A stretch of 64,000 nucleotides of DNA from Epithemia pelagica (lineage: Eukaryota; Protista; Bacillariophyta), in contig OX337237.1 in the NCBI GenBank assembly GCA_946965045.2, forward strand, positions 1,798,001-1,862,000, read 5' to 3'. Shown in pieces: positions 4,240 to 58,367 of the stretch. Within the stretch, counting starts at the first letter, position 1, and each line of letters opens with the position of its first letter. The position numbers and the translations under genes were made by a program. The notes beneath the pieces were generated by a model, which was not told where the DNA came from, ran no database searches, and saw only the letters and a program-made list of their open reading frames with translations.

Positions 4240-4299
4240 GAGAAGGCATCTCTTATTGTCGTCGTCACTGTCGTTTCTTTTTTGTGGTGGTCTTCTTTC

Positions 4300-4690
4300 T
4301 CATTACTCGTCGTCACCCATGGTAACCTTATACATTTACAATCTTCGTGGGGCACCTTAACTAGGTATTATCCCTAGCTTCTTGTGTATCGTTGTCTAGC
4401 TCTTGAATCTTGCTAACAACGGTAGCTTGAGATCTGCGACCATCTTCAGTGGGGTCGGTAAGAAAGGTGCAACCGAGGAGTTCTGTTCTGGTCAATGGTA
4501 AAAAAACTGGTGGTGGGGGACATCCATCCGACTCAAAATCTCGGAAATGGACTATTTCTTGAATGGTCTTCTAAGAATTCTCCCCTTCGAATGGATCAAG
4601 CTGACAGTTACGCTCTGATTTGTTGAGAGCAGAACACACCGCGGAGCGATGTACGATGCGTTGGGTATCATCGCTAAGGATTTGGAATGT
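4300..4690 (-). mobile_element. Degraded CoDi-type Copia pol relic (integrase C-terminal region)
   Basis: WTFQILSDDTQRIVHRSAVCSALN...LDPFEGE resembles FTWKILSADNHILYRSAVRCVAS...DRPSGE of the element at 6965-10522. FLTDPTEDG is present near 4460. Confidence 0.5.
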
Positions 4691-4849
4691 CCACTTTCCA
4701 CCTGGATCCGACTTGTCCTTGGAGGATCTCGACAATAAGGTCAAAGTCGGATTCACAAACTGTCTTCGAAAGTCACTTTGATCGAAAAAGAAGGTGTCCA
4801 ACTCTGCCTTCACCTCAGACTGCACCGCCGTCTTCCTCAATTCGACGTT

Positions 4850-5678
4850 TCACTCAACGACCTCCAGCCTCGTCACCATCTCAGGAGCAATTGACTGAGA
4901 GCCAAAGTGTTTCTCCACAAAATCCTGCATGGAGTGCATGGTTGCAGTGCAGTGCTGCAGAACCGAGAACGCCAAATCTGTCCCAAACTCTTCTGGACGA
5001 CGACCCAACAACGAATGAAGGACTGACAGTTGACAACCATCCCGCAAGTGGTTGACATTCCTGACCAAATTACTCAACACCCCGGCTTGTAGAACTTTGA
5101 CAGACGGAGTGGGCTGCTGAGAACCAATATCCAACGGAACTTCCTTCCATGAAATGGAGGAGCGCCCAACTGGAGTCTTTAGGCCCGCTTCCCACCATTT
5201 CATCAATATCCATAACGTCTTCATCACTGTCGCTGGTTGAAACCATTTCAACCTTCACACGCTTGCTAGACTTGGGAGTCATAGCCGCAAACTTAACCTC
5301 CGCTATAGTATTCGCTATGACCTTAGCTGCGATTGTAGGACTAACCACATCCCCCGCCTCGGACGCGACTTGTCGCAAGGATGCGAATGTTGCCTGCCAA
5401 CTCTCGAGAGATCGCGGACTCAACTCCAGTTTGCTCAACTCGACATCCCGAACACACGAAGCCGGAAGAACAGGTTGACAGAAGACGGTATCGGCAGCAT
5501 CAGCGTTGGAAGAAACGCTACCGCCTCGGATGAAGACACACGCGGAATCATCCCCCACCAAAGAAGCCCAGTCTTGCTTGCGGGCCGAATGCGACGCCAC
5601 AGAACAGTCGGGAAACGAACAATACCGTAGATGACAACCCCACAGAACGAGAAGAATCCGGAGTACTCCCCCACTCAA
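4850..5678 (-). pseudogene. Frameshifted ORF with Cys/His-rich N-terminus, possibly ORF1 of a tyrosine-recombinase retroelement
   Basis: CGVVIYG / RYCSFPDCSVASH split over two frames, then AAMTPK and LGRRPEEFGT. The family assignment is from recall only. Confidence 0.25.
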
Positions 5679-6201
5679 ACATCACAAAAACGATGACAAG
5701 GATGAAGTGGATGGCACAGTCGAACAGGGAGAAACGAAAAAACCAAAGCAAAAGAAGCAGAATCCACAGAACCGTTGGGTGAATGGGTGATCAAATCCTT
5801 GATCACTGTGTGAACCTCCTTCTTTCCAACAATTTATAATTGCTGAACTTTTGTTGGGACGGTCATTTCCATGACTGTCCCAACGAACTCTCTCAACCTG
5901 AGTACTCGTTGGGATCAATGTCTTCTCGTCTACGTTCGTTCGTTGGCCCCTTCTTGACCGGAGCGCTACGATGTGAAGGCAAAGTGCAGCCACTTTGGCT
6001 CGGGTATTCACATTCATCAGGTCATGCAAAGGCCAGACCAAATGCATCTCTATGCCCAACAGAAATTGGGTGGCCGACCGATCATAAATTTCAGCAAGAC
6101 GACGCTGTGCTTCGGGACTTGTGTCGGCGATCCACCTCGAAGTGTAGGGCTTTCGCGAGTTGATTGTCGGGGATCGGGCCGGACTGCCCGGTGCTAATCG
6201 T

Positions 6202-6967
6202 TAGTAGAATTCCGTCAGTACACGCTCTAGAAGAGCCACAATCGATTACCAACTGATACCAAGGTTCTCCACGGGTCAGAGAACAAAGGAAACCCAAGGG
6301 CTCTATCGTAGGGATAGTCAGGACACTGAAGACGTGATGATATGGTGATGTTAATGATTGTGAGCTTACTACTAGGTTTGGTGTGTGAGGTTTCCATTCT
6401 TGTTGTCGATCGTGTGAAATAGGTTCTTGGCGGTGATAGGACTGGAATGGTTGGAGTTGATGTATGTGAGGTATATAACATGTATATGTGCTTGTATATC
6501 ATATACAGCCTCAACGATTCTTGGCTAAAGTTGGTATATGTAGTTTTGTTGGCGCGTCCTTGTTTGCAATCTTGAAATAGTGGGAACGATGATATGGTCT
6601 CGCGTGATCGTGATTCGTGCCTTGTGTACTTAGACCGTTGGGTCGGATACATGATCGCCATGCTCGGATAGTTCTTGCGCGCGTCTTGACGATTTTGGGC
6701 GCGCACGCTTAGGGCATAGGTCAGGCTCGGATGTTCAACGGATGATCGTCCGTTGATGGGATATCAAGACCAAAGTTGATTCTTGATAGCACGCTCGTCA
6801 ATCTGTTCTCACTTTTTGGTATATGCGACCGAAATATAGGTTGAGCTAGCGCAAAGCTAGGTATTTAGTGTGGATGTAGGTGATGTAGGTGATGTTTGAA
6901 GCCACGGGACTCGACTAACCGATGAGGTGCCGAACCTAACCGATGATTTTCGGTGAGAGTTCTACTA
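6202..6967 (-). repeat. 3' LTR of element 1 (766 bp)
   Basis: Near-identical to 13631-14146 apart from 250 extra bp. Ends are TAGTAGAA...TTCTACTA. Preceded on the minus strand by PPT-like GAGCTGTGGGGAG (6968-6980). Confidence 0.95.
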
Positions 6968-9900
6968 CTCCCCACAGCTCGTTGGTTCAGCCTTGTCATC
7001 GCTGGATTCGTAGAGATCTTGAACTTCTCCTCTCCAAAACAATAGGGGCTTGAGTAGAGGCCAAATAGTTGCAAACTCCCAATGCTTGCTGAGGATGTCG
7101 GCAGGGTTGGTCTTCCCATCCTTCCAATAGAATGCAACGTATTGCGCTGCTATCGCTTCTCGTACCCGGTGATATGAAAGGAGATGATGTCTCTTGGACA
7201 AGATAGAATGAGGCATTGTTGCGTTAACAACCACAGATCGATTGTCTCCAAACAGATAACTGCGATCCCTGATTGGTACTCCAAGGTAACAAAGTGAATG
7301 CCGTAATTCAGTGATTTGATCGACTGCTGTCCTTGCTGCCACAAATTCTGATCCATATGTTGCCGTTTCCACAGTGCTCTGTCGTTTGCTGTACCAATCA
7401 ATTGGTGTCCCATTCAAGAGATGCAGGATGGCTGTTACAGACTTTCCTGTGATCATGTCGTGCATAAGGTTAGCATCAACATAGTGCGTTGTCGTCACAT
7501 ATCGTCCAAGTGGTTCTGGGCAATCATGAGGGATGTATTCCTTGGCATCTGAATAGACCGTGCGACTCCAATCAAAGTCTTGACTAGGAATGCTTGAGAA
7601 ATCGGGCTCTCCAATTCGGAATCTGATTGCACCATCAGAAAGATTGAAAAGGTATCCATAGATGCGTTTAGCTCTGTTGAGATGTCCCTGTCTTGGAGCT
7701 GCGCGGAACCTGAAAAGGGTCATCGTAGCAGTAAAAACATCAAAGCGACCAATTGTAATCACCCACTGAAGCTGTCCAATCAAGGTCTGGAAGTGCTGTG
7801 TACCTTCTTCATCAAGGAGTTTGGTGTCGTCCAATTCCGGGTGATCACCAGCAATGAGAGGGGTTTTAGCCTTCTTGGGTTTCTCTTTGAAGATACGTTC
7901 GAAGGTGTCCATCATTTTGCTAATGTATCGGCGTGGATCAGAGACTAGGGTTCCGTCAGGGTCCTTGGTGTACCGGCATCCCAGGTGATAGTCAATAGGT
8001 CCATCTCCCTTAAGCTTGAAGTTGTACTTTTCCTTGAAGACTTTGCAAATGTTTCCAGGGTCAGTAGCTATGATGGCTAAGTCATCCACATATACGGCGA
8101 TGTATTCGTAGCAATCCTCCCCAGGTGCTTTCCTCATCCAAATGTCAGGATCTGCCTTGCTTGGTGAGAAACCCATATCGGTGAGGACGTCAAAAAGGAC
8201 ATCATGCCATCGTGCGCCTGAAGATTTGAGACCATAGAGGGCCTTGTAGATGATGAGGATGTGACCTTCTAGCTCCTTGAACTCGGGTCCTGCCACAATA
8301 TATAACTTCTCCCCAGTCAATGCTTCAAGATACGCATTCCCAATGTCTGCTCCCCATACTTCTAGATCGTTCAGAGATCCAAGGAATAAAGCAATTTGTA
8401 GGTTGCAAATAGAAACAACTCCAGAGTAGATTGTTTCCACAGGTTCCTTCGTCAAGTGTCCATCTGCAACAAGTCGTGCCTTGTGCCTACCATCATGTTT
8501 CACATCAAAAACAAGATGCACTCGAATCTTTTGATATCCCTCAGGTGCATTTGATACCTTGCCATTTGTGAAGATGGCCTTCCCATGGTCCTTGAATGTC
8601 TCATATGATTGTATCTGAGACAGTTCCAATTCAGTTGCGTCTTGCCACCTTGTGGTACCATTTTGTTTGTCAAGATTGACAGCCTTGGCGTAATCTCGAG
8701 GGACTTGGAATCCAAACTTATACTTGACTGAGCGACGTACTTGTTTGATCCTTGATTGTTTTGCAGCACGTATCAGGCGTTTACTCGTCTTGACGTAGCG
8801 TTTTAGGTGTTTCCATCCTGGTTCGTTGAGGAGCCCATGCTTCTTTCCATATATGGCAACGGTGATTGGGTCGTCGTTGGCAATAAGGGAGAGTGGTTCA
8901 TAGGTTGTCTCCCCAGTTTCCCAATCCACAAGCAAGTTATACTTACTCCCCTTATAATCCGGGTCGGTTGAAGACAATGGGCCTTGATGTGCAATAACAT
9001 CCCTGAAACGGAACAAATTATCTCCCGAGGTCTGCGCTTGATTGTCCCTCTCAATATACTCCATCAACTGGTTATAAGAGATCATTTCATCAACGTCAGA
9101 ATTTGTCTTGCGGTAGATGTACTTGATGCGTTCTTCTTGCTTGAGTGATTCTTCATTAAGATCTACAACTCGTTTGACAACGCGTGCTCGATGACGCTCC
9201 CCATTTTCTTCAGTGTCGCATAGGAAAGTGCGTCCTATCATGTCTTCGTAATCGATTGTAGGCATTGGTTTGGATGGATCTTCACTTTTACTGCAAATGA
9301 AGACAGTGTCAGCCTGCTTATCAGTGTCATCTTTCGGAGACGTCTCCCCTGAAGGTCGATCCACACGAAGGTTGGGTGTAGTGGAAGCGACACAGCGAAC
9401 AGCGGAACGGTAGAGGATATGGTTGTCAGCAGACAAAATCTTCCATGTAAAAGCATCACCAACGTTGTGAGCAAAACCAACCCAATAGCCAAGTTTCTCA
9501 TCGGTCGAAGAAGGGTAGGGACCAGACGACGGTTCGGAGGGGTCAACACGATAGTAGACTTCATCCCAGAAGGGAAAGAACAGGAGGTGCGAAATGTCGG
9601 GAGGGTGACCGGTGAGAGCCTCAATAGGAGTACGTCCAGAGTGTGCATGTGAAGAAGAATGATTCAATAAGTCACAGACATATTCAAGGCAAAGTAACCA
9701 AACATTGGCCGGGCATCCAGTTGCATTCATGATAGCGTTCGTCATTCGTTTAACGGTCTGATAACGATTCTCGGCTTTGTTCTGATGCTGGTGGTATGGT
9801 TCAGAGCAATACTCCCCGATGAGCAAGGTGCGAAGGATATCCTTAACCTTATGGGAAATGAGAGATGAACCCCCGTCACTAATGAGTGTCTCCATAACAC

Positions 9901-10522
9901 CTCGCATGCGTATATTGTCTTGAAGAGTGTTCACAAATTGCTTGGTAGACTTGATACCGTAAATATCAGTGACAAGAGTATCGCGGCCAACAAAAATTTG
10001 AGCCACCTTTCCACCATGATCAACAGCAGGTGTATCAGAAAAGATCGAATCGGTAGCAACGGGTTCATGACGACGTGGTAGATTCAGGATAGGGTTGCGT
10101 GCCTTGAAATGTTTCTTGAGAGTGTCACAGTCAAAAATCACATTAGCATGTCGTGTAGTATGCTTGAAAGAAGGGACGAAATTGTTTCCAATCATGTTCT
10201 TCCACAAAACGACGATGGACAGATGCATGTTGAAGGGTTGGGTCTTCACCATTAGCATCAGCATAGATAGAGAAATATGTGGTGTTGTCGGGTCCGTGGT
10301 CATAAGGAAGGTCAAGGAGGAGATTGAGATTGCAGACAACACGATCAGTGTACTCCCCATACGTGTCATATGGATAACGTGCCATACTGCCATCGGTCGC
10401 AACCTGATGCCATGTAGTAGAAGCATCATGCTGTGGATCTGAATGAGTATGGTCAAGAACAGAGGGGTCCCAAGTAGATGGCAAAGTAAAGATGATTTGC
10501 GGCAATCGGTCCATGTCATCAT
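6965..10522 (-). CDS. pol: Pol of element 1: integrase, chromo-like domain, reverse transcriptase, RNase H (homology starts ~10170)
   Basis: VATDSIF, ISDGG, NKAENRY (DDE); ARLVADG, ADIGNAY, KALYGLK, YVDD (RT); HYVDANL, SEFVA, FGDN, NPADILSK (RNase H). Confidence 0.95.
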   Translation of the reverse strand: MMTWTDCRKSSLLCHLLGTPLFLTILIQIHSMMLLLHGIRLRPMAVWHVIHMTRMGSTLIVLSAISISSLTFLMTTDPTTPHISLSMLMLMVKTQPFNMHLSIVVLWKNMIGNNFVPSFKHTTRHANVIFDCDTLKKHFKARNPILNLPRRHEPVATDSIFSDTPAVDHGGKVAQIFVGRDTLVTDIYGIKSTKQFVNTLQDNIRMRGVMETLISDGGSSLISHKVKDILRTLLIGEYCSEPYHQHQNKAENRYQTVKRMTNAIMNATGCPANVWLLCLEYVCDLLNHSSSHAHSGRTPIEALTGHPPDISHLLFFPFWDEVYYRVDPSEPSSGPYPSSTDEKLGYWVGFAHNVGDAFTWKILSADNHILYRSAVRCVASTTPNLRVDRPSGETSPKDDTDKQADTVFICSKSEDPSKPMPTIDYEDMIGRTFLCDTEENGERHRARVVKRVVDLNEESLKQEERIKYIYRKTNSDVDEMISYNQLMEYIERDNQAQTSGDNLFRFRDVIAHQGPLSSTDPDYKGSKYNLLVDWETGETTYEPLSLIANDDPITVAIYGKKHGLLNEPGWKHLKRYVKTSKRLIRAAKQSRIKQVRRSVKYKFGFQVPRDYAKAVNLDKQNGTTRWQDATELELSQIQSYETFKDHGKAIFTNGKVSNAPEGYQKIRVHLVFDVKHDGRHKARLVADGHLTKEPVETIYSGVVSICNLQIALFLGSLNDLEVWGADIGNAYLEALTGEKLYIVAGPEFKELEGHILIIYKALYGLKSSGARWHDVLFDVLTDMGFSPSKADPDIWMRKAPGEDCYEYIAVYVDDLAIIATDPGNICKVFKEKYNFKLKGDGPIDYHLGCRYTKDPDGTLVSDPRRYISKMMDTFERIFKEKPKKAKTPLIAGDHPELDDTKLLDEEGTQHFQTLIGQLQWVITIGRFDVFTATMTLFRFRAAPRQGHLNRAKRIYGYLFNLSDGAIRFRIGEPDFSSIPSQDFDWSRTVYSDAKEYIPHDCPEPLGRYVTTTHYVDANLMHDMITGKSVTAILHLLNGTPIDWYSKRQSTVETATYGSEFVAARTAVDQITELRHSLCYLGVPIRDRSYLFGDNRSVVVNATMPHSILSKRHHLLSYHRVREAIAAQYVAFYWKDGKTNPADILSKHWEFATIWPLLKPLLFWRGEVQDLYESSDDKAEPTSCGE

Positions 10523-12596
10523 CAGAAGGGATACCTAATGAGTGGATAAAGGCAAGTCCATCCTTGATACATAGAGGTAAAGCACGTCCATCAAGGGTAG
10601 TGATACGTTGCTTTCCATCCACCTTGACAGAACGTTCATCCACAGATAGCCCATAATGTTCCAATTGACAAGGCGCATGTATAGACTGTCCTTTTCCATA
10701 GTATGCATATTCGTTGAAGATGCCAACGATTGGTCCATCATTAGTTTCAAACTTGGCAGCACAAGTGACAATGGGGAGACCAGTAAGTTCATGGTTGTCG
10801 ATTCCCACAATCGTGATGTTACGACCTGTCTTGGAAAGGATACGCATATCAGCTCCGGCTAAACCACCATTGGCACCACGATCAATGAGTTGATTCCCAG
10901 TATAAGTCAACTTTCGAGAGAACATATATTGAGTCATGTGGACCTTCTGCTTGTGCTCATTCTGTTTGAAACTAACTTTCTTACTCGTCTTGGATGCGGC
11001 ATTGGATAAAACATTAGACAAATCAGAAGCTGGGTGATTGAGGTCGGTTGACGTCATTGCTTGATGGATGAGATGGGTGGCTGGATCGGAATCATCCTGC
11101 GGATATGTGGGGTTGTCCAGGTCATCGAAAACATCTTGACCAGGGTCAGGATCAGGTTCAGGATCAATGTCAAGGGAGTGTTGCTGTACCTTTCTTGGAC
11201 TCGGAGTAGAAGCTTGCACGTTCTTGTTATACTCAACAATCATCTTGCGAGCATCCTCAGGAAGTTTAAACCATAGGTCACGAGGAAGACTGGCTTTTGG
11301 AGATGCCGTGTTATCATCTTGGACATTGGTATTGTTTATCTGATATGCATCGTCTTCCTGAAGGGATCCCTCAATATCATGTTGTGTTTCGTGTTGCTCG
11401 TGTTGCTTGACACTACGACGACGACCAGTTGCAGAAGCTTGCGTGACTTGATCATGGTCATATGCTGCGTCCATCAAAATGGAGAAGTACGACTGATAAC
11501 ATAAAGACTTTGCTCCAGACTTCGTGTTGACGACGTTGTCCAAGATTTTAACTCTGCGAAGGTCAGGTACCTTCTCGACAGCTTGCATAAGAAACGTCAT
11601 CCTGGTGTGATCAGGTATGCGATCAGAGAGATCAACAAGGTTATCGAGTAAACGTAGTTTGTCTTGGAAATGAAGCAAGAATTGGCGTGATGATCCACGC
11701 CATGTATCATCGAGGCGAAGGTTGGAGATGTAATTGGTTAATCGTAAGACCTCTCGTTTTGCTAAGTCTGACTTCGTATGCAATGTGTGAAGCTTCTGTA
11801 ACACTGCTCGTGCGTCTTCATCATGCTCATGTTCGCGAACATAAGCTCTTCCTTGATCAGTCTGGATGATGCGCACAAGGACGGAGTATAGGAAGATTTG
11901 TTGCTCTTGGAAAAGTTCTGTTGCATACGTATCATTCGTTGGCGGCTTGCATCGGAAGTCAAGAACATTAGATAAACCTTGGGCTTTTGCTGTGGTCTTG
12001 AAAGTCCTCCAGAACGTGTCGTAGTATCGTTCATCCTTGAATGTTTCATATGCCATAGCGTCACGCTTGGTTCCCTTCTTGAATGCGGTTAGGTCCAGTT
12101 GGGACTGTGATGCAGCAGAAGTAGTACTAAACGATTTGGGTGACGTCGAATGGGATGGAGATTTCATAGGTGCTACTGGGTCAGTGATAGGGCTTCCAGA
12201 GCGAAAGTCAGTGTTTATCCTCCATAGATCAAATTCTGCCTTGGTCAGATTCATCCAGGTTGCCTTGGAAGGTATACCCTGAATGTCGATACTCGTTTGT
12301 CGGAACCAATGGGCAAGCAACTTGATCTGCTGGCTTGTATTGACATGTAGGTCGTGCATTTGTTTTCCTGACTTGTATTTTGTCGTACTATCCATGTTCT
12401 TCTCAGGGTCAATCGCCATATGTTCAATGATACTAAGGATATCATCAAAAGCATGATGGTGCATCCATTTCACGAGTACATCGACCCTTTCCTTGGAAAA
12501 GTTGAACAACACCTGAGTAATATGATCAAAGACTTCTTGATCAGATATACTTTGATTGGGGTTGAACTCTGGTGTGGTCGGTGTAGTTGGTTCCAT
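10143..12596 (-). CDS. gag: Gag-protease of element 1
   Basis: DERYYDTFWRTFKTTAKAQGLSNVLD and YSVLVRIIQTDQGRAYVREHE (CoDi gag); LIDRGANGGLAG (aspartic protease). Confidence 0.9.
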   Translation of the reverse strand: MEPTTPTTPEFNPNQSISDQEVFDHITQVLFNFSKERVDVLVKWMHHHAFDDILSIIEHMAIDPEKNMDSTTKYKSGKQMHDLHVNTSQQIKLLAHWFRQTSIDIQGIPSKATWMNLTKAEFDLWRINTDFRSGSPITDPVAPMKSPSHSTSPKSFSTTSAASQSQLDLTAFKKGTKRDAMAYETFKDERYYDTFWRTFKTTAKAQGLSNVLDFRCKPPTNDTYATELFQEQQIFLYSVLVRIIQTDQGRAYVREHEHDEDARAVLQKLHTLHTKSDLAKREVLRLTNYISNLRLDDTWRGSSRQFLLHFQDKLRLLDNLVDLSDRIPDHTRMTFLMQAVEKVPDLRRVKILDNVVNTKSGAKSLCYQSYFSILMDAAYDHDQVTQASATGRRRSVKQHEQHETQHDIEGSLQEDDAYQINNTNVQDDNTASPKASLPRDLWFKLPEDARKMIVEYNKNVQASTPSPRKVQQHSLDIDPEPDPDPGQDVFDDLDNPTYPQDDSDPATHLIHQAMTSTDLNHPASDLSNVLSNAASKTSKKVSFKQNEHKQKVHMTQYMFSRKLTYTGNQLIDRGANGGLAGADMRILSKTGRNITIVGIDNHELTGLPIVTCAAKFETNDGPIVGIFNEYAYYGKGQSIHAPCQLEHYGLSVDERSVKVDGKQRITTLDGRALPLCIKDGLAFIHSLGIPSDDDMDRLPQIIFTLPSTWDPSVLDHTHSDPQHDASTTWHQVATDGSMARYPYDTYGEYTDRVVCNLNLLLDLPYDHGPDNTTYFSIYADANGEDPTLQHASVHRRFVEEHDWKQFRPFFQAYYTTC

Positions 12597-12809
12597 GATT
12601 GCTTGACTTGGCGATAAGATATGTTGATATGTGTCCTGTGATGTCTTAGTCGAAAACTTTAGTTATGTTTTCTAACCCGTATGTGTGGTGTGCCCTGTGA
12701 ACCCGGATGTGCCACGTATGTCCACGTGTGATGTGATGTCCGAAAGGGAACCCGGATGTGAGAAACTCGGTCTTGTCTCTGGTTTGGTGTGAAAACTACT
12801 TAAATTTAC

Positions 12810-13589
12810 TTAAACGTGGTCACTTCTGGGCTCGTTGTTGTAATCAAGTTGAATCGGAGACTCAGTAACAGAGGTAGCTTCTTCGTTGCCGTTGTGGTCC
12901 TCAACTAGGTGGTTCACTGGTTGGGTGAGTAGAGGGAAGATAGTGGCACGGAAGTCCTGGTGCAACTTGATAACGTGGATGAAACCAACGTAGTCGTCGA
13001 GACGGGTAGTCAAGGTAGGAAGAGGTTGGTTAGTCTTGTTCACGACCCAAATGGTATGGAAGTAGTTGACCGGACGCTGGAAAGTAAGGAAGCGTACCCG
13101 AAGGCAGCCTGATGGGGTGGTCGATAGGGTCGTCGCTATGTGCCGGTAGCTTGGAGATTGGTATAGCAAATCTAGGAGTCGTTGGATATCCTCTAGGTCG
13201 ACGACGGGTTGGACGGACTCGAACGAGACCTCGTGTTCGAGCGTCGAACGGATGTGGTCCGGGTCGCTCTGATACTCGGATGGCTCGCGGAAGTAACGGA
13301 GGTGCGCGTTGATGAGACGGCTCGTACGTCGGGTGCGAGTTGGGTTCGGGCGAGGAGGTGTACTCGGTCGGCGTGCAAGGGTGTTCGGCGGGCGATTCGG
13401 GTCGGACGGCGGAGGGACGACTTGATCGGGAGTCTGGAACGGATTAGGCGTGCTAGCCTTCTCCGGGGAGTTAGAGGGCGTCTCGATGAGGAATTCGCCA
13501 GGGTGGACGGCAATCTGCTGTGTTGGGTCACCACTCTGCTGGAAAGCGTTGTAGATCCGACGGACAGGAGTATTGGGGTCACTGGACAT
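12810..13589 (-). CDS. Extra 259-aa ORF between the PBS and gag of element 1, unknown product
   Basis: Uninterrupted ATG-initiated ORF about 25 nt after the PBS. Pro-rich N-half, globular-looking C-half. Confidence 0.5.
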   Translation of the reverse strand: MSSDPNTPVRRIYNAFQQSGDPTQQIAVHPGEFLIETPSNSPEKASTPNPFQTPDQVVPPPSDPNRPPNTLARRPSTPPRPNPTRTRRTSRLINAHLRYFREPSEYQSDPDHIRSTLEHEVSFESVQPVVDLEDIQRLLDLLYQSPSYRHIATTLSTTPSGCLRVRFLTFQRPVNYFHTIWVVNKTNQPLPTLTTRLDDYVGFIHVIKLHQDFRATIFPLLTQPVNHLVEDHNGNEEATSVTESPIQLDYNNEPRSDHV

Positions 13590-13613
13590 GAAAACTTCGG
13601 GGAAATGAGACAG

Positions 13614-13629
13614 GTGAGACTGTTAATCG
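13614..13629 (-). other. Candidate primer-binding site complementary to the anticodon arm of tRNA-Asn(GUU)
   Basis: Plus strand GTGAGACTGTTAATCG directly inside the 5' LTR. CTGTTAA is a canonical Asn anticodon loop. Confidence 0.6.
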
Positions 13630-13630
13630 T

Positions 13631-14146
13631 TAGTAGAATTCCGTCAGTACACGCTCTAGAAGAGCCACAATCGATTACCAACTGATACCAAGGTTCTCCA
13701 CGGGTCAGAGAACAAAGGAAACCCAAGGGCTCTATCGTAGGGATAGTCAGGACACTGAAGACGTGATGATATGGTGATGTTAATGATTGTGATTCGTGCC
13801 TTGTGTACTTAGACCGTTGGGTCGGATACATGATCGCCATACTCGGATAGTTCTTGCGCGCGTCTTGACGATTTTGGGCGCGCACGCTTAGGGCATAGGT
13901 CAGGCTCGGATGTTCAACGGATGATCGTCCGTTGATGGGATATCAAGACCAAAGTTGATTCTTGATAGCACGCTCGTCAATCTGTTCTCACTTTTTGGTA
14001 TATGCGACCGAAATATAGGTTGAGCTAGCGCGAAGCTAGGTATGTAGTGTGGATGTAGGTGATGTAGGTGATGTTTGAAGCCACGGGACTCGACTAACCG
14101 ATGAGGTGCCGAACCTAACCGATGATTTTCGGTGAGAGTTCTACTA
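13631..14146 (-). repeat. 5' LTR of element 1 (516 bp)
   Basis: Matches 6202-6967 minus 250 bp. Confidence 0.95.
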
Positions 14147-16028: not shown

Positions 16029-18271
16029 TTGCCTTTTCCCCAAGATGACGACAATGCTGAAAACCAAGGCATCCCATCGACCATTGAAAGGGCCCAACGT
16101 CGGGCTCAACTCCGAACTGCAGCTGGAGAAGATGGGTCACCTGCTCTGTCCAATCTCACAGACAACCAGCCAAGTCAAGGCATTACAGGCAACACACCTC
16201 CAACCAATCCTGACTCTCGTCCCATACGCCTTTTCGGGAGTGGCAGTACTGTCACTGATGGAGAATCTGGTACCGCGACAGAGAACGCGTCAATGCCTAG
16301 TCGGCGACTTCGACGACGACCCAATGACACAGAGGACTAAAGCAACTTTGAATCCGACGAAGATGGAGCGGACCCAGATGACGATTTGGAACAAGACGAA
16401 CAAGTTCCACGCCCAGATAATCCATTGGAGGACCAGAACGATTCGGACAATGAGGATGAAGAGGAAACCAACGAAGCACCCCCTCCCGTGCCCCCTCCAC
16501 AACAAAACACAAATGCTGCACAACAAAACACGAATGAGAACAACCAACCAGAACAAACTATTTGTCAACTCATGGATGCGTTGGTATTTTCATATCAAGA
16601 GACAGAACTTTCGGCTGAACCTACCAAATGGATTGGAAAAGACGCGAATCACTGTTCCATATACAGCGGACCAGATGGTCTCAGGGATGGTGTTAGTGAC
16701 AACTTTACCAATCAATACCAATGTTTCCAGTTTGTTAATGGCCTGTCGAACTCGCTGATAGCAGATATGGCAACCGCTACGAACGTTTATTTCCACGAGA
16801 AGATAAAACTAAACCTGGTGTCTCGTCGTGGATACTACCACTCACAAAAATGGCAGAATGTCACTCTCGAAGAGATGACGAGATTTCTTGGGACCATCCT
16901 GATGATGTCCCTTCGTCCCGTCGACGGAGGAGGATACGGTGCATATTTTCAAACTACAAATCGCATGTATAATGTCGGGGCCGGCCAACGGGCTATTGAA
17001 ATCAAAGATAGCACAGGATGGACCAGTCAATATATGAAGTTAGCGCGTTTCTGGCAGATTCGGGGGGCTTTCCACTTCGAGGAGAGTCCAAGCAGGCGTG
17101 GTGGCGACAAATGCCATCAGTTACGGAAGTTGATAACAGCCCTCAACGCAGCTTCAAAACGTAGCTTCCGGATTCCCAAAGACACGGCGTTCAACGAAGG
17201 TGGCATTGGATGCAGGTCACGGTACTGTCCAGTGAGACAGCATAACAAAGATAACCCCACAACCCGGTGAATGGGCTCATCTTCGGGCAGTGGGTGGATT
17301 CGAAAACGGTGAACTTCGTAAGTTCCTACGAAGATTGCGGAAGTGGGACCGTCCTCCGGCAAGTGGGCAGTCAGAAGGTGGAGTTCGTTTGCCCTGTACC
17401 ACTTATACGGTACCAAATGAATATGGGTGGCGTCGATAATGGTGACAAGATGAGGTTTCAGTTTGGAGGATTTGCAACCCATTCCCACTTCAAGAAATGG
17501 TATATGAAATCTGGCTTCGCTGTGATTGATTATATGCTGCTCAACAGTTATATTGTGGAACCTTGCAGCAGGCAATCGTCCTCGTTCCCGTAAAACGAAG
17601 TTGTTGCGGCATGCATTTTACACAATCATTGCCCAAACAATGTGCAGCTACGTCGTTCCTCAGGAAGTAGACGCTTTGGCTCGTCGGACAAGAAACAACA
17701 ACGAATCAACATGTAACGATGGGCACTTCCCAGTGGCGGTAGAAAGCAACAAACAAGTTGGATGTGCTGTGTGCATGCTGGAATATAGATGGAAGAAGCA
17801 AGAACTTAAGATGGGGGGGGGGGGGGGGGTGGTGTGTGATTCAAGAACGTTGGGAGATGCGTCAAGTGTGGGATTGCGGCCCACACGGTGGCTTGCCAAC
17901 ACAAACGAGAACAAGGCTGGAAAATCCACAACCGGCCTGAGTTTCAGAACAAGACGTGCTTCGAAATCTTACACTCATCAACAGGAAAAGAGATTTTTGT
18001 GGAGGCAGACGAGGGGTCTCGGTACACATACACGGTGAGAAAGAACCATCCCGTTGTGGCGGAACTACGGGAAGCACAAGGCTTGACATCAACGTTGACT
18101 CAGAAAAGAACACGCCAAGGAGCCGGAGAAACACAACCACGTAGACGAAGACGACAAAATGAGAATGAAGAGTCGTATCAAATACTGACAACGAGAACAA
18201 CGAAGATGACGACGAAGATGTTGAAGAGTTGGAGGAAGTGTAGTAAAAAACAGATCAACATATCAAATTGA
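16029..18271 (+). pseudogene. piggyBac/PGBD transposase, disrupted
   Basis: VTLEEMTRFLG, MKLARFWQIRGAFHF, AFNEG (first catalytic D reads N), QWVDSK, MGGVDNGD, LLNSY, C-terminal Cys motifs. In-frame stop at 16338, an apparent internal deletion at ~17268, and later frameshifts. Confidence 0.85.
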
Positions 18272-18326
18272 CGTTCTAAGCAATATTCAGTTACTACTAC
18301 GAGGATGTATTGACTCCCTGTGATGC

Positions 18327-18968
18327 CTAATGGTCAGTAGGAGCAGGAATGAAACCAGTATAAGGGTCGTCTGTGTTTTCGTTAGGGAAATTTTCACGGA
18401 CAAAGTCAACTAGGCAAGGAGGCAGTTCACCACGGTTGCCCTCCCCCAGTGTGCCATGGAGCTTGTTGGAAAGGCGGCGGTACAAATGGTAGCATATGGA
18501 ACGGTTAGGCTTACCAAGCCCCTTGAGGTGCGTCGCAATATCGTGCATGTAAGGGAGGTGCTCAACAACTTGGCACGGGTTGAGTTTGCAAACGGGGCAA
18601 ACATTCTCCCAAAACATGTATCCATGTTTATTGCTAGAAGACTGTTGAGTATTGTTCAATTCATGAAGGATGCGGTCAATGCTTTCCATCGTCGCGTATT
18701 CTTCAGGAATAAAGCGGGTTTCAGTACGTTCTTCGGCTTGGTGAACTACGTTGCCGTCCTGATTTGTTGTCATGACAAGATACTTCTGCAGGGTAAAGGG
18801 CACAAACACTCCACTTGATGAACAGTTGTTGTCGGGGAGGTGGGCTTCTGCAATGTCGACAGATTCACTGAACGCTAAAAGACAAAACAAAAATGAGGTG
18901 AGGAGCATTTGCGCATCGAGAATGGGTTCGATAACAACTTTTGGTAGAATCGTTCCGTACAAACTCAC
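18327..18968 (-). CDS. Passenger ORF with P2X7-ballast/KolX-like C-terminal motif
   Basis: CPVCKLNPC...YHLYRR...HGTLGEGNRGELPPCLVDFVRENFP...YTGF matches the YR...G...LPxC...R..FP....YxGF pattern. Lies inside the TIRs, convergent with the transposase. Confidence 0.6.
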   Translation of the reverse strand: MSLYGTILPKVVIEPILDAQMLLTSFLFCLLAFSESVDIAEAHLPDNNCSSSGVFVPFTLQKYLVMTTNQDGNVVHQAEERTETRFIPEEYATMESIDRILHELNNTQQSSSNKHGYMFWENVCPVCKLNPCQVVEHLPYMHDIATHLKGLGKPNRSICYHLYRRLSNKLHGTLGEGNRGELPPCLVDFVRENFPNENTDDPYTGFIPAPTDH

Positions 18969-19253
18969 CTTCCATCATACCCGGGTCATCCATGTTTGCG
19001 TTGTGGTTTGGTTCGACAATTCAATGATCCCAATGACAAAGTGCAATGAGATCAGTCAATGCATTGGATACCACAGCGCGATAAAAGCAACAAAAATGAT
19101 GCTGGCGGAGAGTTAAAACGATCTGTTTTCAAACACGGTTAAGGCGCGAGCAGTATAAGCGAGCATAACCACTAATCCCATAAATTTTATGCGAGTAGTA
19201 GATTAGTTGCTCGCTAGTGCTTAAGACGCGTTCCTTACGAATGGCGTTAAAAA

Positions 19254-22123
19254 ATGTCTTACCTCGGTTTAAAACCAATGCCTCGAAGGCACCGAATCAC
19301 GGATTGGCAGCAAGACAAAAGCCAAAAAAACCTCCAAGTTGGATTCCATCAGCCGATCGAGGTGGTCGCTCGCGCCGTTGTCGACAAAACACAAGACGAC
19401 AACAAGACATTGACCACTTTCTGGCCATCTCAGACCTGTAGACAACGTAATTAAATAAAGATGGTTAGTAGGTCATCCTCTGGTGCTGTGCAATCGTTTG
19501 CAGCAGCACAAAGTGCTGCAAGAGCAGCAATGGGCCCTCAGTCGCAACGACTGGGCAACTTGTACAGTCGACTCCCCGTTCGACGCGGACAACGACGCTC
19601 TGGTTACCAAACACTTACCAGGGTTGTGGAGTTTCAACAAGAGATTGATTGTTGTGTGTGTTGAGCCAAACACAACAACCTCCCCATACCACACAGAGCC
19701 CACCACATGCTCTGCCCACTCAACAAGAAAACAAAAGGAAAGCCACACAAGACAAACGAACTGGGAGAGATCAAGAGACTGGTGGACAAAGCAGCCAAGG
19801 AGAGGGAAAGAAACAACAAACAACCATTGTCTGAAGCTGAAAAGCACAGACCAGGAATCACCATGGAGGACTGGGAGGACTTCATGAAGCCGCGTCCGAA
19901 TACGGCCAAAAAGTATTGAACCCAGTAAAGTCGTTGACAGGTGAGGAGTTGGCAGAAGAGAGAATGGGCGAAATCACCAACGGTCATAGTGTGACAGAGA
20001 CGAGGATGTCGGCCGAACATTTCAAAAATGAAATATTACATAGGGTTTCACACGGTACATTCAACGGTATCACGTGTCCCAAGACGATGCATGCGCTTGC
20101 TGCATTTATACAAGACACGTGCCTCGGGGCCAAGCGTGATACGGGTATCTTATCGAATTTTTTCGATGGTATGGAATTTTGTGTACCGACATGCGCGAAC
20201 AACACTTGTGCCTTGTACGACTCGTTTTCTCGGCAGAAACTCTTGGTTGTGGATTGGGAACTCTTCTTTCCTGGAGAAGAACTCTCTTGTCCTAGTTGTA
20301 ACGGCAAACTTCAGCGTACATGGACAAACTTTTCTGAAAAAAAGTGTGTTTTCCCCCTTTTCGGAATAAATGGTCCCCCACGCTATGCCATCGTCATGCA
20401 CCACCGACGCTCGGCATGCAAAACATGCTTCCAAGGGAATGAGGGGCGAATTGGCAAAACTTCCACCCTGGATCGCCATGGCGTACCCTGTCGAGCCCAA
20501 ATATGCAAAGGGAATGGCACACGTGATAAAAGAAGCAACACATCTATTTGATGAGCTAATGGTTACCCATGGCAATGGCGATCTGTGCTCAAAGCAAATA
20601 TACAGTGGTATAAACAAAGATTACGAGGACAGACAAATGAGGTACTATTCCTTTTGCGTCTCAACTGGGCAAAAAAGTGAGGACTATCCTAAAAAGGATG
20701 GTGAATGGCTGGTCACCTTTCCTCCACAAGGTGACACCATCCGACAACTCTATGATGCTGCTTGCAACTGTGACTGGAACTGGTGGGGTTTGTCAGACCA
20801 CGACAGACAAACAAGGGAAATACAAATGGTAAAGTGTGAGGGTACCTTTGCATACGACCATACTTTCCAGGCGGTCAGGAACTACCCCTCAGCCTGCAAG
20901 GCCAAGGCAGTCTGGGATGTTACCACAGAGAAAGGACAGATTGCATGTGCCATCCTTGTCAAAACAACAAGAATCAAGGAGGCTAGCCATGCAGCTGAAC
21001 AGCTAGCACGTCGCGAATCCTTCAAGCCCAAGGCCCTCTACTCCGACACATGGCCATGCTTGGAAGGATACTGGGCATTGATACTTGGGGAAGAAACTGC
21101 AAGTAAAGGTCGGCTTGGTCTATTCCACTTTATGCAACGAATCACCAAGACCATGCGACCACGACACATCGACTTTCCGAGGGCCCTGCGTGAATTGAAA
21201 ATGAAATTATATGAGTACAATGATGAAGACATGAACAATGTCATTGAGGCATTGAAGGCGGGGACATTGTCCAACAGCAAAAAGCAATACACAGAGAGTG
21301 AGATTAGTGACTTGCTCAATTCACCAGAGTTTGGACGGGATACGAAAAATACGTACGGAAAACAATTCGGTCAAAGGAATGCATCATTGTCAAACTTGAA
21401 GAATTCAAGATAAACTTCAAGGTGACAGCGTCCCCTGACAAACCGGCCGCAAGAGGAAGATGCGACCCACGGACAAACCAGCCTCTCTTTACAGAGGACA
21501 CTCATCAGGCTATAGGAAATTGCAAGGACAAAGCGCAGTATTTGTCAGATCCATTTCCTGTAGAAGAAATGTACGTGACAATCCCACCGAACAAAAATGC
21601 AAGACATGACTTACCTGAGTACTTGGGAGTGCGAGGCGAGTCAAAGCTAGAAAGTTTTCATGACAATCTGGCGCATTTTGGAAATTGTGGGATGCGTGAG
21701 AGTTTGGCCGACAACCTGAATCTATGCGGTACCACACGTTACAATCTTACCATTCGTTACAAGTTTCATTTACTCGGAATGAGCGCTGATGAGCGTACAG
21801 CCATGCCATCTGGATGGGAAGCTGTGGTTCCAGTGTGGAACCACACTAAACTGAAGTTCATCAACACGATGGCTTTTAGGTCTGGGTCAAAAGAACAGTT
21901 CGAATGGGTGGAGGACTTACCAGAAGATAACGGTGAGCGCTTCTTCTCTGAATACTTGGTGCAACAAGAGAAGCGTGAGAAAGAAATACCAGAGGACAAG
22001 CCAGAGGACAAAGTGCTGCGAAGTTCCAAAGTCGTGAAGGAGGACTCAGAAATAGCTCCTGGGGAGGTAGCGCCATGGTGGATGTGCCGGGCCGTTGGGA
22101 AGTCTCAGCGGCCGGAGCGGTAG
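19254..22123 (+). pseudogene. Dada/DUF6729-like DDE transposase, frameshifted
   Basis: CPSC zinc motif, YDHTF (~20855), YSDTWP (~21040), RLGLFHFMQRI (~21115), RGESKLESFH (~21632). Stop at 19917, frameshifts at ~20446 and ~21331. Confidence 0.55.
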
Positions 22124-22272
22124 TGGTGGTAGCCGCTGGGGAAGCGTCCGAAGGCCTCGAAAGATTACGTTACAAGGTCTGGGAGGCTCCAGGGTCGGTA
22201 GTAGCCGTCGCAGGCTGGAAAAACTGGATTGCAATGAAGCAGCACCAGCAGGAGGGTCCAAATGACTGGGGT

Positions 22273-22470
22273 GGAGGCAGTAATAGTGCGGGAGGAGCGA
22301 CGATTGGCCACGGTGAAGGTAGCCGCAGAAGGTAGGGGGTGGAGGCAGTAGCAGTGCGGGAGGAGCAAAGATTGGCCACGGTGAAGGTAGCCGCAGAAGG
22401 TAGGGGGTGGAGGCAGTAGCAGTGCGGGAGGAGCGACGATTGGCCACGGTGAAGGTAGCCGCAGAAGGTA
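22273..22470. repeat. 68-bp tandem repeat x3
   Basis: Units start at 22273, 22341 and 22409. One unit is 69 bp in the duplicate near 63205. Confidence 0.95.
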
Positions 22471-22618
22471 CATAGAAAAAGGTACTAAAGGACTATAGAG
22501 CTATAGAGTAGGCTGCAAAGATGCGCAGTCGTTGAGAAGCCCGATCACATGATCAACACCGCAATAAAATAAACGCTCACTCCGTGACTTTTTGCAAATT
22601 GTTACACTCGAAAGCTGA

Positions 22619-23703
22619 TCACTGGAAAGGCCTCACAAAGAACTCTTGCGACCCGAGTCCACAAGCTCCCGTTTCAATGTATTTCTTCTTCTTGACATGC
22701 TTCAAATTCTTGCGGATGAACTGCGAAATGTCTAGCATCTGGTGATTAGTTGTTTGTTGATTGCCATTGCGAAGGTATTGCAGATAGTGCTGTAGTATAT
22801 CTACATCCGCTCCGCGGAGTGGGGAGGCACGAGAAGGGGCTATTGACTCCGAGAAGGGCAATAGCTCCGAGAAGTGGACCGCCTTCTAAATCCGCGTCAG
22901 CGGATTTGGCGGTCCACGACGAGGAGCTATTGCCCGCCGAGGAGTCAAAAGCCCCGACAAGTGCCCCCACGACCAGGAGGGGATGTCGCTTGCTTCTATA
23001 ACCTCCGAGTCCCCCCCAATTAACTGTCACACTTTTTTCCCAGGACTGTTTTTTTTGCTCTGCACTAGCTTTTTTGCACCGCACTTGCTCGCGTATGAGA
23101 GCGCGGCCGTCGTGGGCAATATAAGGCTATATTAGCCGAAAATCCTACTTCCATTCCGAGGAGCTATAGTAGCAGAACACTGGCATGCAGACAACAGATT
23201 CCAGATTTCTGTTTACGAATAACAAGATAGTTGTTGATTGCTTCTTCTTCAAAGAAAAGCCACGAGAACTCAATCAATGGAATGTTTACAGCTCCTTTGT
23301 CCTCCTCACTTTTCATATCTCTAATTTTTTCGACGAAGCCGTCAAATTTGTTTTGAAATGTGGTGGTGTAACGACCAGTGTTGTGATTGCGCGATGGCCT
23401 CCAACTGAAGTCCTCGGACATGAGGCGTTTGGCACAAAGCCGTTGTGCATCATTTAGGTCCTCCCAATTCAAACCAAGCCCTGTTACGAATTGTTCTGCC
23501 AGTCTTGTGCACTCTTCAAAGGACATGGTTGGTTGATTTGAAGGTACCATAGGTGTCTCACTTTGAGGCGTATCAGTGGAGCTTGTGGTGGAAGAGAGGG
23601 TGAGCTGGGGCGTGGGGCGAATGCGCACAGTGGCCGGAGATTCAAATGTCGTAATCATAGAGGCGGGTTTGTGGTCTTCTTGTGTTGACATGCTGTCCAA
23701 CAC
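22619..23703 (-). pseudogene. Papain-like cysteine-peptidase-type ORF split by a 374-bp insertion
   Basis: Removing 22796-23169 plus one TAG joins RKQKSGICCLHASVLL to QHYLQYLRNG in frame. Q...C is the papain-like oxyanion/nucleophile spacing. The His/Asn half is not seen. Confidence 0.45.
22796..23169 (+). mobile_element. Small non-coding structured insertion element (hairpin element A)
   Basis: TAG on both sides (22793-95, 23170-72). 184-nt foldback at 22803-22986 with four 5x5 internal loops. Interrupts an ORF cleanly. Confidence 0.8.
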
Positions 23704-56825: not shown

Positions 56826-58012
56826 CTCCTCTTGTAGGGCTTAATAGAACCCATGGAGATAATCTGTCGGTGCTCCTTCCTCATCGTCCCGGAGGATGGT
56901 TGCATTAACGCCGTCAAGTAGCTGCCGGGGGTCCGCCATGGTCGACTCCGCTTTTTTCTTAGTCTTTCGGCTCCAACCATATGTCCACCCTCCAACCCTG
57001 ATTCTTACATGCTGGCTGACTCTTGTCGACTCGGTGAGTCTGCCGGGCGAGCTCCTGTATCCCTATGTATTCCATTCGTTTGACTTAAAATCCTAACTGG
57101 AATGGTTACTAAAGACCTAATACGTATTAGGTTACTTATCGAAAATATCCGTCCGTACGTTCTCACTCTATCTTTCCTACGTCGTGACTGTATCCCTATG
57201 TATTCCATTTGTTTGACTTAAAATTCTAACTGGAATGGTTATTAATGACCTAAATGATGAACCCATCATCTTCGACATTTTTAATATGGTCTTCCATGTC
57301 ACATACACAAAGATTTAAGAATTTCAATTCTTTCACAATTTCGAGAAGCATGCCTTGTGTCTCATCCCTGACGGTATTATCCCGTGTACGTGTACGATAA
57401 TGGTGTGAAGAGTGGGAGGGAATCTCGGAGGGAATTTCATTTGGAGTAGGCGACTCGTGTGACAGTGAATCATTATTTTGGTGATCTTCCTCGGTGTCTT
57501 CTGTAGATTCGTTTTCTTCAATTTTGTTGACATTCCTTTTAGCTTGGTTGATAATGTACTCGTTACAGAACACCTGGTAGAATGGATTTGTCTGTACACT
57601 GGTTCGCGCTGCTCTGATTTCTGTCCATCTGCAAATTGGAGTGTCACACGCTTCCTGGATCCAATGGACTCTGGAACACGAGTGACCCACCCCAGGTAGT
57701 TCTTGCGACTGGAGGACCTAGAGTTCACCACCGCGATATCACCAATATTCCACATATACACGATCCCCGCCACAGGATTCACTGACCGATTCATAACAGA
57801 TCGAGGAACAACGCTAAATTTTGTTATCGATTTGGTCCTATATGGCGATAATGCAACCTGTATGGCGATCATATCTGGCGATATCGCTAGTTATAATTAA
57901 CATGTTGTCGTCTATTTATGCGAGGGACTACTATTGTCCAGACCAAACTACTACTACAACTACTACTAACTCCATACCAGACTGTGTAGGTAGTTCGTCT
58001 CACATTTCTATA

Positions 58013-58363
58013 CTACAGTAGGAATTTTTTGTACAACCGGGAAGTAGTTTCGTGCGAGTCGCGCGGTTTCCCCCTCGTGTGTGACACTTGTGCGACACTT
58101 GTGTGACACTTTGTGACATGGCTTGCAGGAATTTCTCACTACCTACACAGCTTGATAGGGAGTAAGTTTACTACTTCCCTGTGTCTGGCCGTCCTCTCGC
58201 GTCGGGCGCGCCCGGCTTGTCGGGAGAATGACTCGACGGGCAATTGTCTTGTCGGGCGTGCGCCCTCCTCGACCATTGCCCTCCTCGTCATTCTACCCTC
58301 CGCGCCGGGCGGTCCCTCCTTGAAAGGACTCGACACCGGGAAGTATTAATACTACTACTACTA
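58013..58363 (-). mobile_element. Small non-coding structured element (hairpin element B) including flanking TAG units
   Basis: 174-nt foldback at 58172-58345 with three clear 5x5 internal loops. TAG at both ends; (TAG)4 on the 5' side. Confidence 0.7.
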
Positions 58364-58367
58364 CCGC

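Follow-up and report, generated by a model that had tools for sequence, protein, structure and literature searches.

The 64,000-nucleotide stretch analysed here (positions 1,798,001 to 1,862,000 of contig OX337237.1, Epithemia pelagica assembly GCA_946965045.2; called the window in the following) contains a non-coding repetitive element of 377 nt, element A, which occupies positions 22796-23172 and interrupts an open reading frame (ORF) on the minus strand. A target GTAG directly precedes the element at its 5' side, the element ends with a GTAG of its own at the 3' side, and its 5' part is predicted to fold into a long rod hairpin with regularly spaced purine loops. Element A is probably, on balance, a non-autonomous derivative of a transposon that is moved by a site-specific recombinase, most likely a tyrosine recombinase of the Crypton type, and would be mobilised in trans. 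A site-specific recombinase is favoured because the GTAG is non-palindromic, has one orientation, is present on both sides of the element, and is single in the empty site.

Element A, its host segment and its relatives

Public contigs from two runs of the same organism and from two metagenome runs were aligned to positions 22300-23700, and the stretch was found to be present in contigs of three runs of one organism. A contig with an empty site, present in two organism runs, lacks the 377 nt from 22792 to 23168, and four bases could be assigned to either side of the joint. The empty site reads GCT-GTAG-CAG and the filled site GCT-GTAG-[TATAT CTAC ... CTATA-GTAG]-CAG; the host sequence at this point is GCTGTAGCAG and has a single GTAG. 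Once the 377 nt are removed, the two pieces of the minus-strand ORF (23703-23173 and 22795-22619) are continuous in frame. The initial annotation, made from the letters of this stretch, had described a mobile insertion at TAG that spans 22793-23172 and whose removal restores the interrupted ORF. The mobility and the restored frame are borne out by the empty site, and the right end of that span was correct. The left end and the target had to be revised: element A starts at 22796, and the flanking repeat is GTAG (22792-95 and 23169-72).

An insertion that generates an intron was considered and rejected, as in none of its registers, read on the ORF strand, does the 377-nt insert combine an initial GT with a terminal AG. 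The ORFs confined to element A are only 29-50 amino acids (aa) long. A word search revealed no homologue of the 179-aa piece of the host ORF, and no exact product is on record for two ORFs internal to the element and for a 347-aa host ORF.

The comparison of copies and flanks that had been proposed together with the annotation showed that element A is far more repeated in the public contigs than its own flanks. The summed word depth of the contigs, which is not a copy number, ranges from 4,000 to 14,000 over the element; the flanks, a repeat in their own right, reach about 600, and single-copy contigs about 100. In one organism run, 98 contigs aligned. Element A is young and has tens of copies. 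Relatives at 90-95% identity are present in a biofilm metagenome and in a marine-sediment metagenome. The alignment of the sediment-metagenome copy begins at 22791, so that GTAG-TATAT-CTAC is present there, too, and a further locus of the organism, which has a different flank, can be aligned as far as 23173, so that it also has the GTAG end. A metagenome scan with a 19-base motif that is conserved with the biofilm relative yielded two matches, both to an unrelated bacterial coding region, and four scans of viral contigs yielded nothing, or AT-rich chance matches without the rod.

Element B, 389 nt long, belongs to a second family and was used for comparison. Its span (Table 1) is wider than the 58013-58363 that had been assigned before, and its 3' end GGAGTTA-GTAG lies at 57973-57963. 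At the 5' end, GTAG is followed by TATAT-CTAC-ATCC in A and by TATTA-ATAC-TTCC in B, and the 3' ends read ...GGAGCTATA-GTAG and ...GGAGTTA-GTAG, respectively. The linkers of both elements contain TGTCACAC, and CTACTTCC occurs close to the 3' end of each. When the window was searched for GTAGNNNNNMTACWTCC with at most one mismatch, exact matches were found at A, at the duplicate of A and at B, and a fourth match, with 1 mismatch, lies inside B (four matches compared with 0.58 expected). The helices of the two rods have no sequence in common. B lies within a (GTA)n-like run, with GTAG targets on both sides. The linker of A contains a GC-rich hairpin near 23087-23107 and a small hairpin, GGCTA-TAT-TAGCC, at 23125-23137. 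A short interspersed element transcribed by RNA polymerase III was rejected as an identity of A; the T-runs of the linker are not conserved in B.

The host of element A is a 5.6-kb segment that continues the ORF of a piggyBac-type transposase, with a DDE_Tnp_1_7 domain upstream at 16386-17267 (Pfam). This segment is duplicated: 17431-23060 equals 58365-64000 at 99.3%. The second copy of A in the window is thus not independent, but is the same insertion event within the duplicate. The two copies differ solely by a 7-nt length difference in the C-run after the rod, which comprises 7 bases at 23011-23017 and 14 bases at 63944-63957; length variants at this place occur in the reads, too.

The duplicate begins inside the piggyBac transposase ORF, at a conserved MGGVD stretch (17431 and 58365). 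In the first copy the piggyBac ORF extends upstream, and in the second copy the break adjoins element B and a TAC repeat. The second copy is therefore a truncated piggyBac element with a breakpoint that coincides with a putative recombinase-type element, and it was possibly formed by deletion or rearrangement at a GTAG site. In overlapping minus-strand ORFs at 22046-22473, beside the host gene, a proline-rich unit (PSPWPI.APPALLLPPPP.FCGYLHRGQS) recurs, which points to coding sequence repeated in tandem. A contig of the biofilm metagenome matches the host flank 22622-22790 with 4 differences in 169 positions and stops exactly at 22790, before the GTAG; therefore, the environmental sample contains a close relative of the host repeat.

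Table 1. Positions of element A, its parts and associated features in the window
Feature	Position	Strand	Basis
GTAG of the left flank (target or terminal direct repeat; single in the empty site)	22792-22795	+	sequence, empty-site joint
Spacer TATAT, 5 nt, AT-only, between GTAG and CTAC (TATTA in B)	22796-22800	+	pattern search
5' terminal segment CTACATCCGCTCCGCGGAGTGGGG; alternative partners 22965-22986 (rod base) or 3' end 23149-23172	22801-22824	+	
Rod hairpin, 184 nt	22803-22986	+	fold prediction
5'-arm loops GAGAA at 22831, 22851 and 22869, plus GCGGA at 22814	22831-22873	+	
3'-arm loops GACGA 22918, GCCGA 22936, GACAA 22956, GACCA 22971	22918-22975	+	
Non-coding linker: variable C-run, TGTCACAC at 23026-23033, three T-runs, two hairpins	22987-23144	+	
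Subterminal direct repeat CTACTTCCATTCCGAGGAG of the 5' end; B has CTACTTCC at the equivalent place	23145-23163	+	
3' end CTATA-GTAG (B: TTA-GTAG)	23164-23172	+	
Second copy of A, cut by the window end, same insertion in the duplicated segment	63729-64000	+	99.3% duplicate
Interrupted host ORF, 179 aa + 58 aa, within the duplicated 5.6-kb segment	22619-23703	-	ORF list, empty site
Element B, 389 nt, comparator family	57963-58351	-	

The rod hairpin and its purine loops

The segment 22798-22992 folds as one unbranched rod with RNA as well as with DNA parameters, and none of the shuffled sequences folds as well. The RNA fold has -131.3 kcal/mol (z -13.8) on the plus strand and -124.5 kcal/mol on the minus strand, and the respective values of the DNA fold are -71.8 kcal/mol (z -12.1) and -65.4 kcal/mol. 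Folding of both strands, which had been recommended as a check, thus yields a deeply stable rod that is more stable on the plus strand, although the nearest-neighbour energy gap between the strands is only 6-7 kcal/mol. From base to tip the helices have 6, 4, 5, 5, 15, 13, 10 and 8 bp; the apex is GTCA, and there is a TTCT bulge. All eight stems and all four loop pairs (GCGGA/GACCA at 22814/22971, GAGAA/GACAA at 22831/22956, GAGAA/GCCGA at 22851/22936 and GAGAA/GACGA at 22869/22918) were recovered where the initial annotation had placed them.

Each of the four loops is a 5x5 purine loop with a central G-C. The earlier proposal was that G.A pairs could form at both ends of each loop; in the predicted fold, every loop consists of two 2x2 purine-purine loops that flank one G-C pair. 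Together with their closing pairs the GAGAA loops of the 5' arm read CGAGAAG each, and the loops of the 3' arm have the same polarity and differ mainly at the central base, which forms the G-C pair. In an ungapped comparison of the 61-nt arms there are 14 mismatches, 12 of which are purine-purine, and the pattern of two mismatches, one match and two mismatches occurs three times, which was equalled in 15 of 200,000 random placements. The claim that such a regularity exceeds the random decay of the palindrome of a miniature inverted-repeat transposable element (MITE) therefore stands, and the loops are kept in other copies and in B. It is supported that the loops are a maintained feature and not the result of palindrome decay, because element B and variant copies keep purine-rich spacers in spite of different helices and the consensus restores the pairing of the helices.

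The variant copies illustrate both parts of this argument. The 15-bp helix, given as 14/15 in the annotation, is indeed interrupted in this copy, in which it consists of 6 + 8 bp around a single A.A mismatch (22841/22949). This does not extend to the family: all other contigs that cover 22949 have T instead of A, so that the stem is 15/15 in every other copy read. Judged from these sequences, the helices of the family are perfect and the loops alone are open. One variant has the apex GATCCGC-GTAA-GCGGATC in place of AAATCCGC-GTCA-GCGGATTT of this copy, with changes on both sides. Contigs that diverge at 22846/22850 and at 22945 continue with other helices (e.g. GGCG/CGCC instead of the 15-bp helix), and these novel helices are still spaced by CGAGGAG, CAAGAAG and CGACGAG. 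Neither perfectly paired arms nor random loop sequences, either of which had been named as refuting the annotation, were seen in other copies in the contigs. Thus, a loop type CGAGRAG opposite CGACNAG is retained on one fixed strand, and the helices of the first 190 nt are free to change. One variant in the reads lacks 59 nt of the 5' arm and the apex (22839-22899) and has GA instead; it cannot form the full rod and has a single-copy-like depth.

The unpaired positions of the rod are purines at 35 of 42 places on the plus strand, compared with 7 of 42 on the complement (p 7.5e-6). In the rod of B, which has loops of the GAGRA/GACAA type, among them GAGGA facing GACAA around a central pair, 42 of the 50 unpaired positions are purines. 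The strand asymmetry claimed for A is thus real, and it is linked to the polarity of the element: in both elements the purine loops are on the strand that reads GTAG-N5-(C/A)TAC. Within the present data, this link between purine strand and polarity in two families supports a function of one strand better than any other observation. A stage as single-stranded RNA or DNA, as the initial annotation proposed, may be inferred only from the strand bias and the energy difference of 6-7 kcal/mol.

The very stable fold would also be expected of a structured RNA gene within a repeat, such as a precursor of a hairpin or small RNA, a retrozyme with a ribozyme, or a viroid-like RNA, and the rod has a weak match to the plant microRNA precursor model MIR1858 (42.6 bits). 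However, this score is far below the gathering score of 137 and reflects merely a long hairpin, the rod covers only half of the element, and no RNA run contains the stretch. An Rfam search of both strands of 22600-23400 with E values up to 10 retrieved no ribozyme family, only look-alikes of microRNA precursors below threshold. Helices of 13-15 bp that are interrupted by 5x5 loops are a poor substrate for Dicer. An RNA gene is therefore regarded as highly improbable.

Joints, end pairing and mode of movement

The oriented GTAG has been found to the left of A, of B and of the metagenome copy, and to the right of A, of B and at another locus. The left joint of A has the form GTAG-N5-CTAC, and the final four bases of the element, GTAG, are the complement of the CTAC at its 5' end. 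These features would also suit a single-strand "peel and paste" element with an HUH enzyme, following the logic of IS200/IS605, or a eukaryotic Rep transposon of a kind not yet described. In that case the top strand would be folded, the CTAC at the rod foot would pair with the GTAG cleavage sites at the left flank and at the right end, and the element would insert 3' of GTAG without a duplication. An oriented fixed tetranucleotide lies 5' of the insertion and the element ends with the same tetranucleotide, the hairpin is strand-specific, and the adjoining CTAC exactly complements GTAG; moreover, recognition of hairpins is a property of HUH enzymes, and the ends of Replitrons carry short direct repeats (PMC10288648). 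By anatomy alone, this mechanism fits almost as well as a site-specific recombinase. It should be noted, however, that B has ATAC instead of CTAC, that the 3' end carries only small hairpins of 5-bp to 7-bp and none that is comparable to the rod, and that a survey of Replitrons detected none in any diatom (PMC10288648). An HUH element is thus considered doubtful.

An identity as a Helitron or Helitron2 was rejected. The rules for Helitrons and Helitron2 comprise insertion at A^T or T^T, a 5' TC or T, a 3' CTRR and a 3' subterminal hairpin (PMC3627910). None of the five possible joint registers in the host sequence GCTGTAGCAG falls on an AT or TT step, and the ends of A are TATAT/CTAC and GTAG, without a 5' TC and without a 3' CTRR.

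The 5' terminal segment CTACATCCGCTCCGCGGAGTGGGG has two alternative partners. In folds of the hairpin only it pairs with the base of the rod, and in folds of the whole element (RNA or DNA, linear or circular) 22801-22824 shifts from the rod base to 23149-23172, with CTAC on GTAG. The duplex of the 5' 28 nt and the 3' 28 nt of A has -15.1 kcal/mol, compared with -6.9 +/- 1.7 kcal/mol for shuffled sequences, of which 1 in 1000 is as good. The initial annotation had noticed that the 5' end recurs as a direct repeat near the 3' end, and the sequence bears this out, with 15/19 identity between CTACATCCGCTCCGCGGAG (22801-22819) and CTACTTCCATTCCGAGGAG (23145-23163). As a description of the end structure the direct repeat is incomplete: because the core of the repeat, CTCCGCGGAG, is palindromic, the ends of A also form an imperfect inverted repeat of 22 nt (16/22).

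Inverted ends with significant pairing (1/1000 shuffles), four duplicated bases and a size and abundance typical of MITEs are together reminiscent of a MITE or foldback element moved by a DDE transposase, with imperfect 22-nt terminal inverted repeats, a 4-bp target duplication and the rod as an internal palindrome. Yet the same oriented, non-palindromic GTAG is found in A, in B, at a second locus and in the metagenome copy, whereas the duplications made by DDE transposases vary and are free of orientation. B has the ends of A but no terminal inverted repeat beyond TAC, the sole DDE element of the window is piggyBac, which uses TTAA, and the conservation of loops over unrelated helices would be left unaccounted for. 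An origin by a DDE transposase is, in our judgement, fairly improbable.

In element B, the 3' end pairs with the segment that directly follows the rod (-19.6 kcal/mol, 0/1000 shuffles as good), and this internal pairing, a 30-nt inverted repeat at 57965-57994 and 58138-58167, would splint the 3' end beside the 5' end. According to the predicted folds, the 3' end is thus placed at the rod foot in A as well as in B, through different pairings. A segment that is complementary to the 3' end and lies beside the partner of the 5' end, together with subterminal direct repeats of the 5' end (23145-23163 in A; CTACTTCCCGG in B), is also what a non-autonomous retroelement related to DIRS or Ngaro might contain, which would be copied from RNA, form a cDNA circle via an internal complementary region and be inserted by a tyrosine recombinase; an RNA or cDNA stage would be in keeping with the strand-specific structure. 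Against such a retroelement, the equivalent splint in A is non-significant (-6.7 kcal/mol, 181/1000 shuffles as good), and no public RNA run contains the element, which is a weak negative. It appears improbable.

The recombinase transposon that is preferred here could move as follows. The element would be excised as a circle, in which the joined ends would rebuild a site with imperfect 22-nt inverted arms around GTAG-TATAT-CTAC. Re-entry would occur by strand exchange at a genomic GTAG, so that the flanking GTAG would be the crossover core and not the duplication of a staggered cut. The rod, which starts 5 nt from the joint, might present the recombination point at the foot of the folded top strand, either as a hairpin or as an extruded cruciform. 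Its pseudo-symmetric purine loops could be repeated docking sites for the recombinase or a partner, in parallel to integron integrases, which read folded attC sites by shape and unpaired bases. Several properties of Cryptons are in accord with this scheme: they are presumed to move by recombination of such a circle joint with a genomic site, their terminal direct repeats of 4-6 bp are taken as recombination substrates (PMC3212892), non-autonomous Cryptons are known (PMC3212892), and the sole diatom Crypton that has been described has a CTGTAAG repeat (PMC3212892, Additional file 1).

Several observations weigh against a Crypton-type origin. The putative tie to a tyrosine recombinase is, within these data, drawn from the anatomy of the ends, and the window contains no recombinase gene (a Pfam search of 15 ORFs found a Copia-type reverse transcriptase and integrase and the piggyBac DDE domain). 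Cryptons have been described without inverted repeats or structured ends, and A has both. The ends of B do not pair with each other (799/1000 shuffles are as good), and, as far as the predicted folds go, A and B do not have one simple joint geometry in common. The N5 spacer is TATAT, whereas the target continues with CAGAA after GTAG, so that the identical crossover stretch would be only 4-5 nt long. The single GTAG in the empty site would equally fit a 4-bp target duplication or an insertion 3' of a fixed tetranucleotide. Furthermore, the empty site belongs to a paralogue that is about 13% diverged and is not an allele. TAGTA, like GTAG, is common to both joints of this copy of A, and because of the divergence of the paralogue the crossover core may be the 5-nt TAGTA.

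To our knowledge, no class of eukaryotic DNA transposons is less well understood than the Cryptons, whose ends are called featureless and whose mechanism is assumed by analogy. A conserved strand-specific rod 5 nt from an oriented GTAG, present in abundant derivatives of 377-389 nt, would provide a concrete and testable cis-acting structure. Going further, we tentatively propose, as a possible but speculative extension, a family of eukaryotic recombinase transposons and their miniatures in which the substrate is one folded DNA strand, the rod gathers both ends at its foot, the CGAGRAG/CGACNAG loops are a recognition code, and the helices drift freely. In the searchable literature we found no description of a purine-looped rod at a Crypton-type end or in a miniature derivative, and the word "hairpin" is absent from PMC3212892. 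Element A contributes a clean empty site, a second family for comparison, and two families with different closure of the ends. There is also a practical aspect: these elements break ORFs, cluster with other repeats, and are easily mis-annotated as MITEs or microRNA hairpins.

Comparison with known systems

Among the known systems closest to A are the Cryptons, with the CryptonS group that occurs in oomycetes and diatoms, and the non-autonomous forms derived from them (Goodwin 2003; Kojima and Jurka 2011, PMC3212892). Like A, they are bordered by a short, fixed direct repeat of 4-7 bp that is single in the empty site, they make no variable target duplication, their miniature non-coding derivatives outnumber the coding elements, and the host group is the same. 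The repeat of the diatom Crypton, CTGTAAG, differs from GTAG or TAGTA in A. Cryptons have been described without inverted repeats and structured ends, in contrast to A with its 184-nt rod 5 nt from the joint and its pairing ends, and the link of A to a recombinase is a presumed one.

DIRS1-type elements have an internal complementary region, and B likewise splints its 3' end beside its 5' end. In A, the splint is non-significant, there is no coding capacity, and an RNA stage is without support in the public runs. In Helitron2 or Helentron elements (Bao and Jurka 2013, PMC3627910), as in A, the 5' terminal segment is part of a 5' hairpin and has an alternative subterminal partner near the 3' end. 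However, their T^T target and end nucleotides are not matched in A, the rod of A is ten times longer, and in A the small 3' hairpins precede the 3' partner, whereas in Helitron2 or Helentron the hairpin follows it.

The IS200/IS605 elements (IS608, ISDra2) resemble A in their insertion 3' of a fixed tetranucleotide and in a subterminal hairpin together with a 4-nt complement of the cleavage site; only one strand is active, a likeness to A by anatomy alone. They belong to prokaryotes, each of their ends carries a short hairpin, and the enzyme that moves them is of the HUH type.

The attC sites of integrons (IntI) and the attP site of the CTX phage (XerCD) are recombined by tyrosine recombinases that act on folded single strands. 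As in A, the hairpin is imperfect and strand-specific, the sequence of the helices is free, and unpaired bases and geometry are conserved; the recombination point is at the base of the folded strand, as it would be in A. These sites are bacterial, are 60-150 nt long and have extrahelical single bases, whereas the elements described here are eukaryotic, contain four to five symmetric 5x5 purine loops, and are putative single-strand substrates. If a folded strand is indeed the substrate, the rod would be the eukaryotic counterpart of the logic of integron attC sites or of IS608, and recombination sites that are read by structure would not be confined to bacteria.

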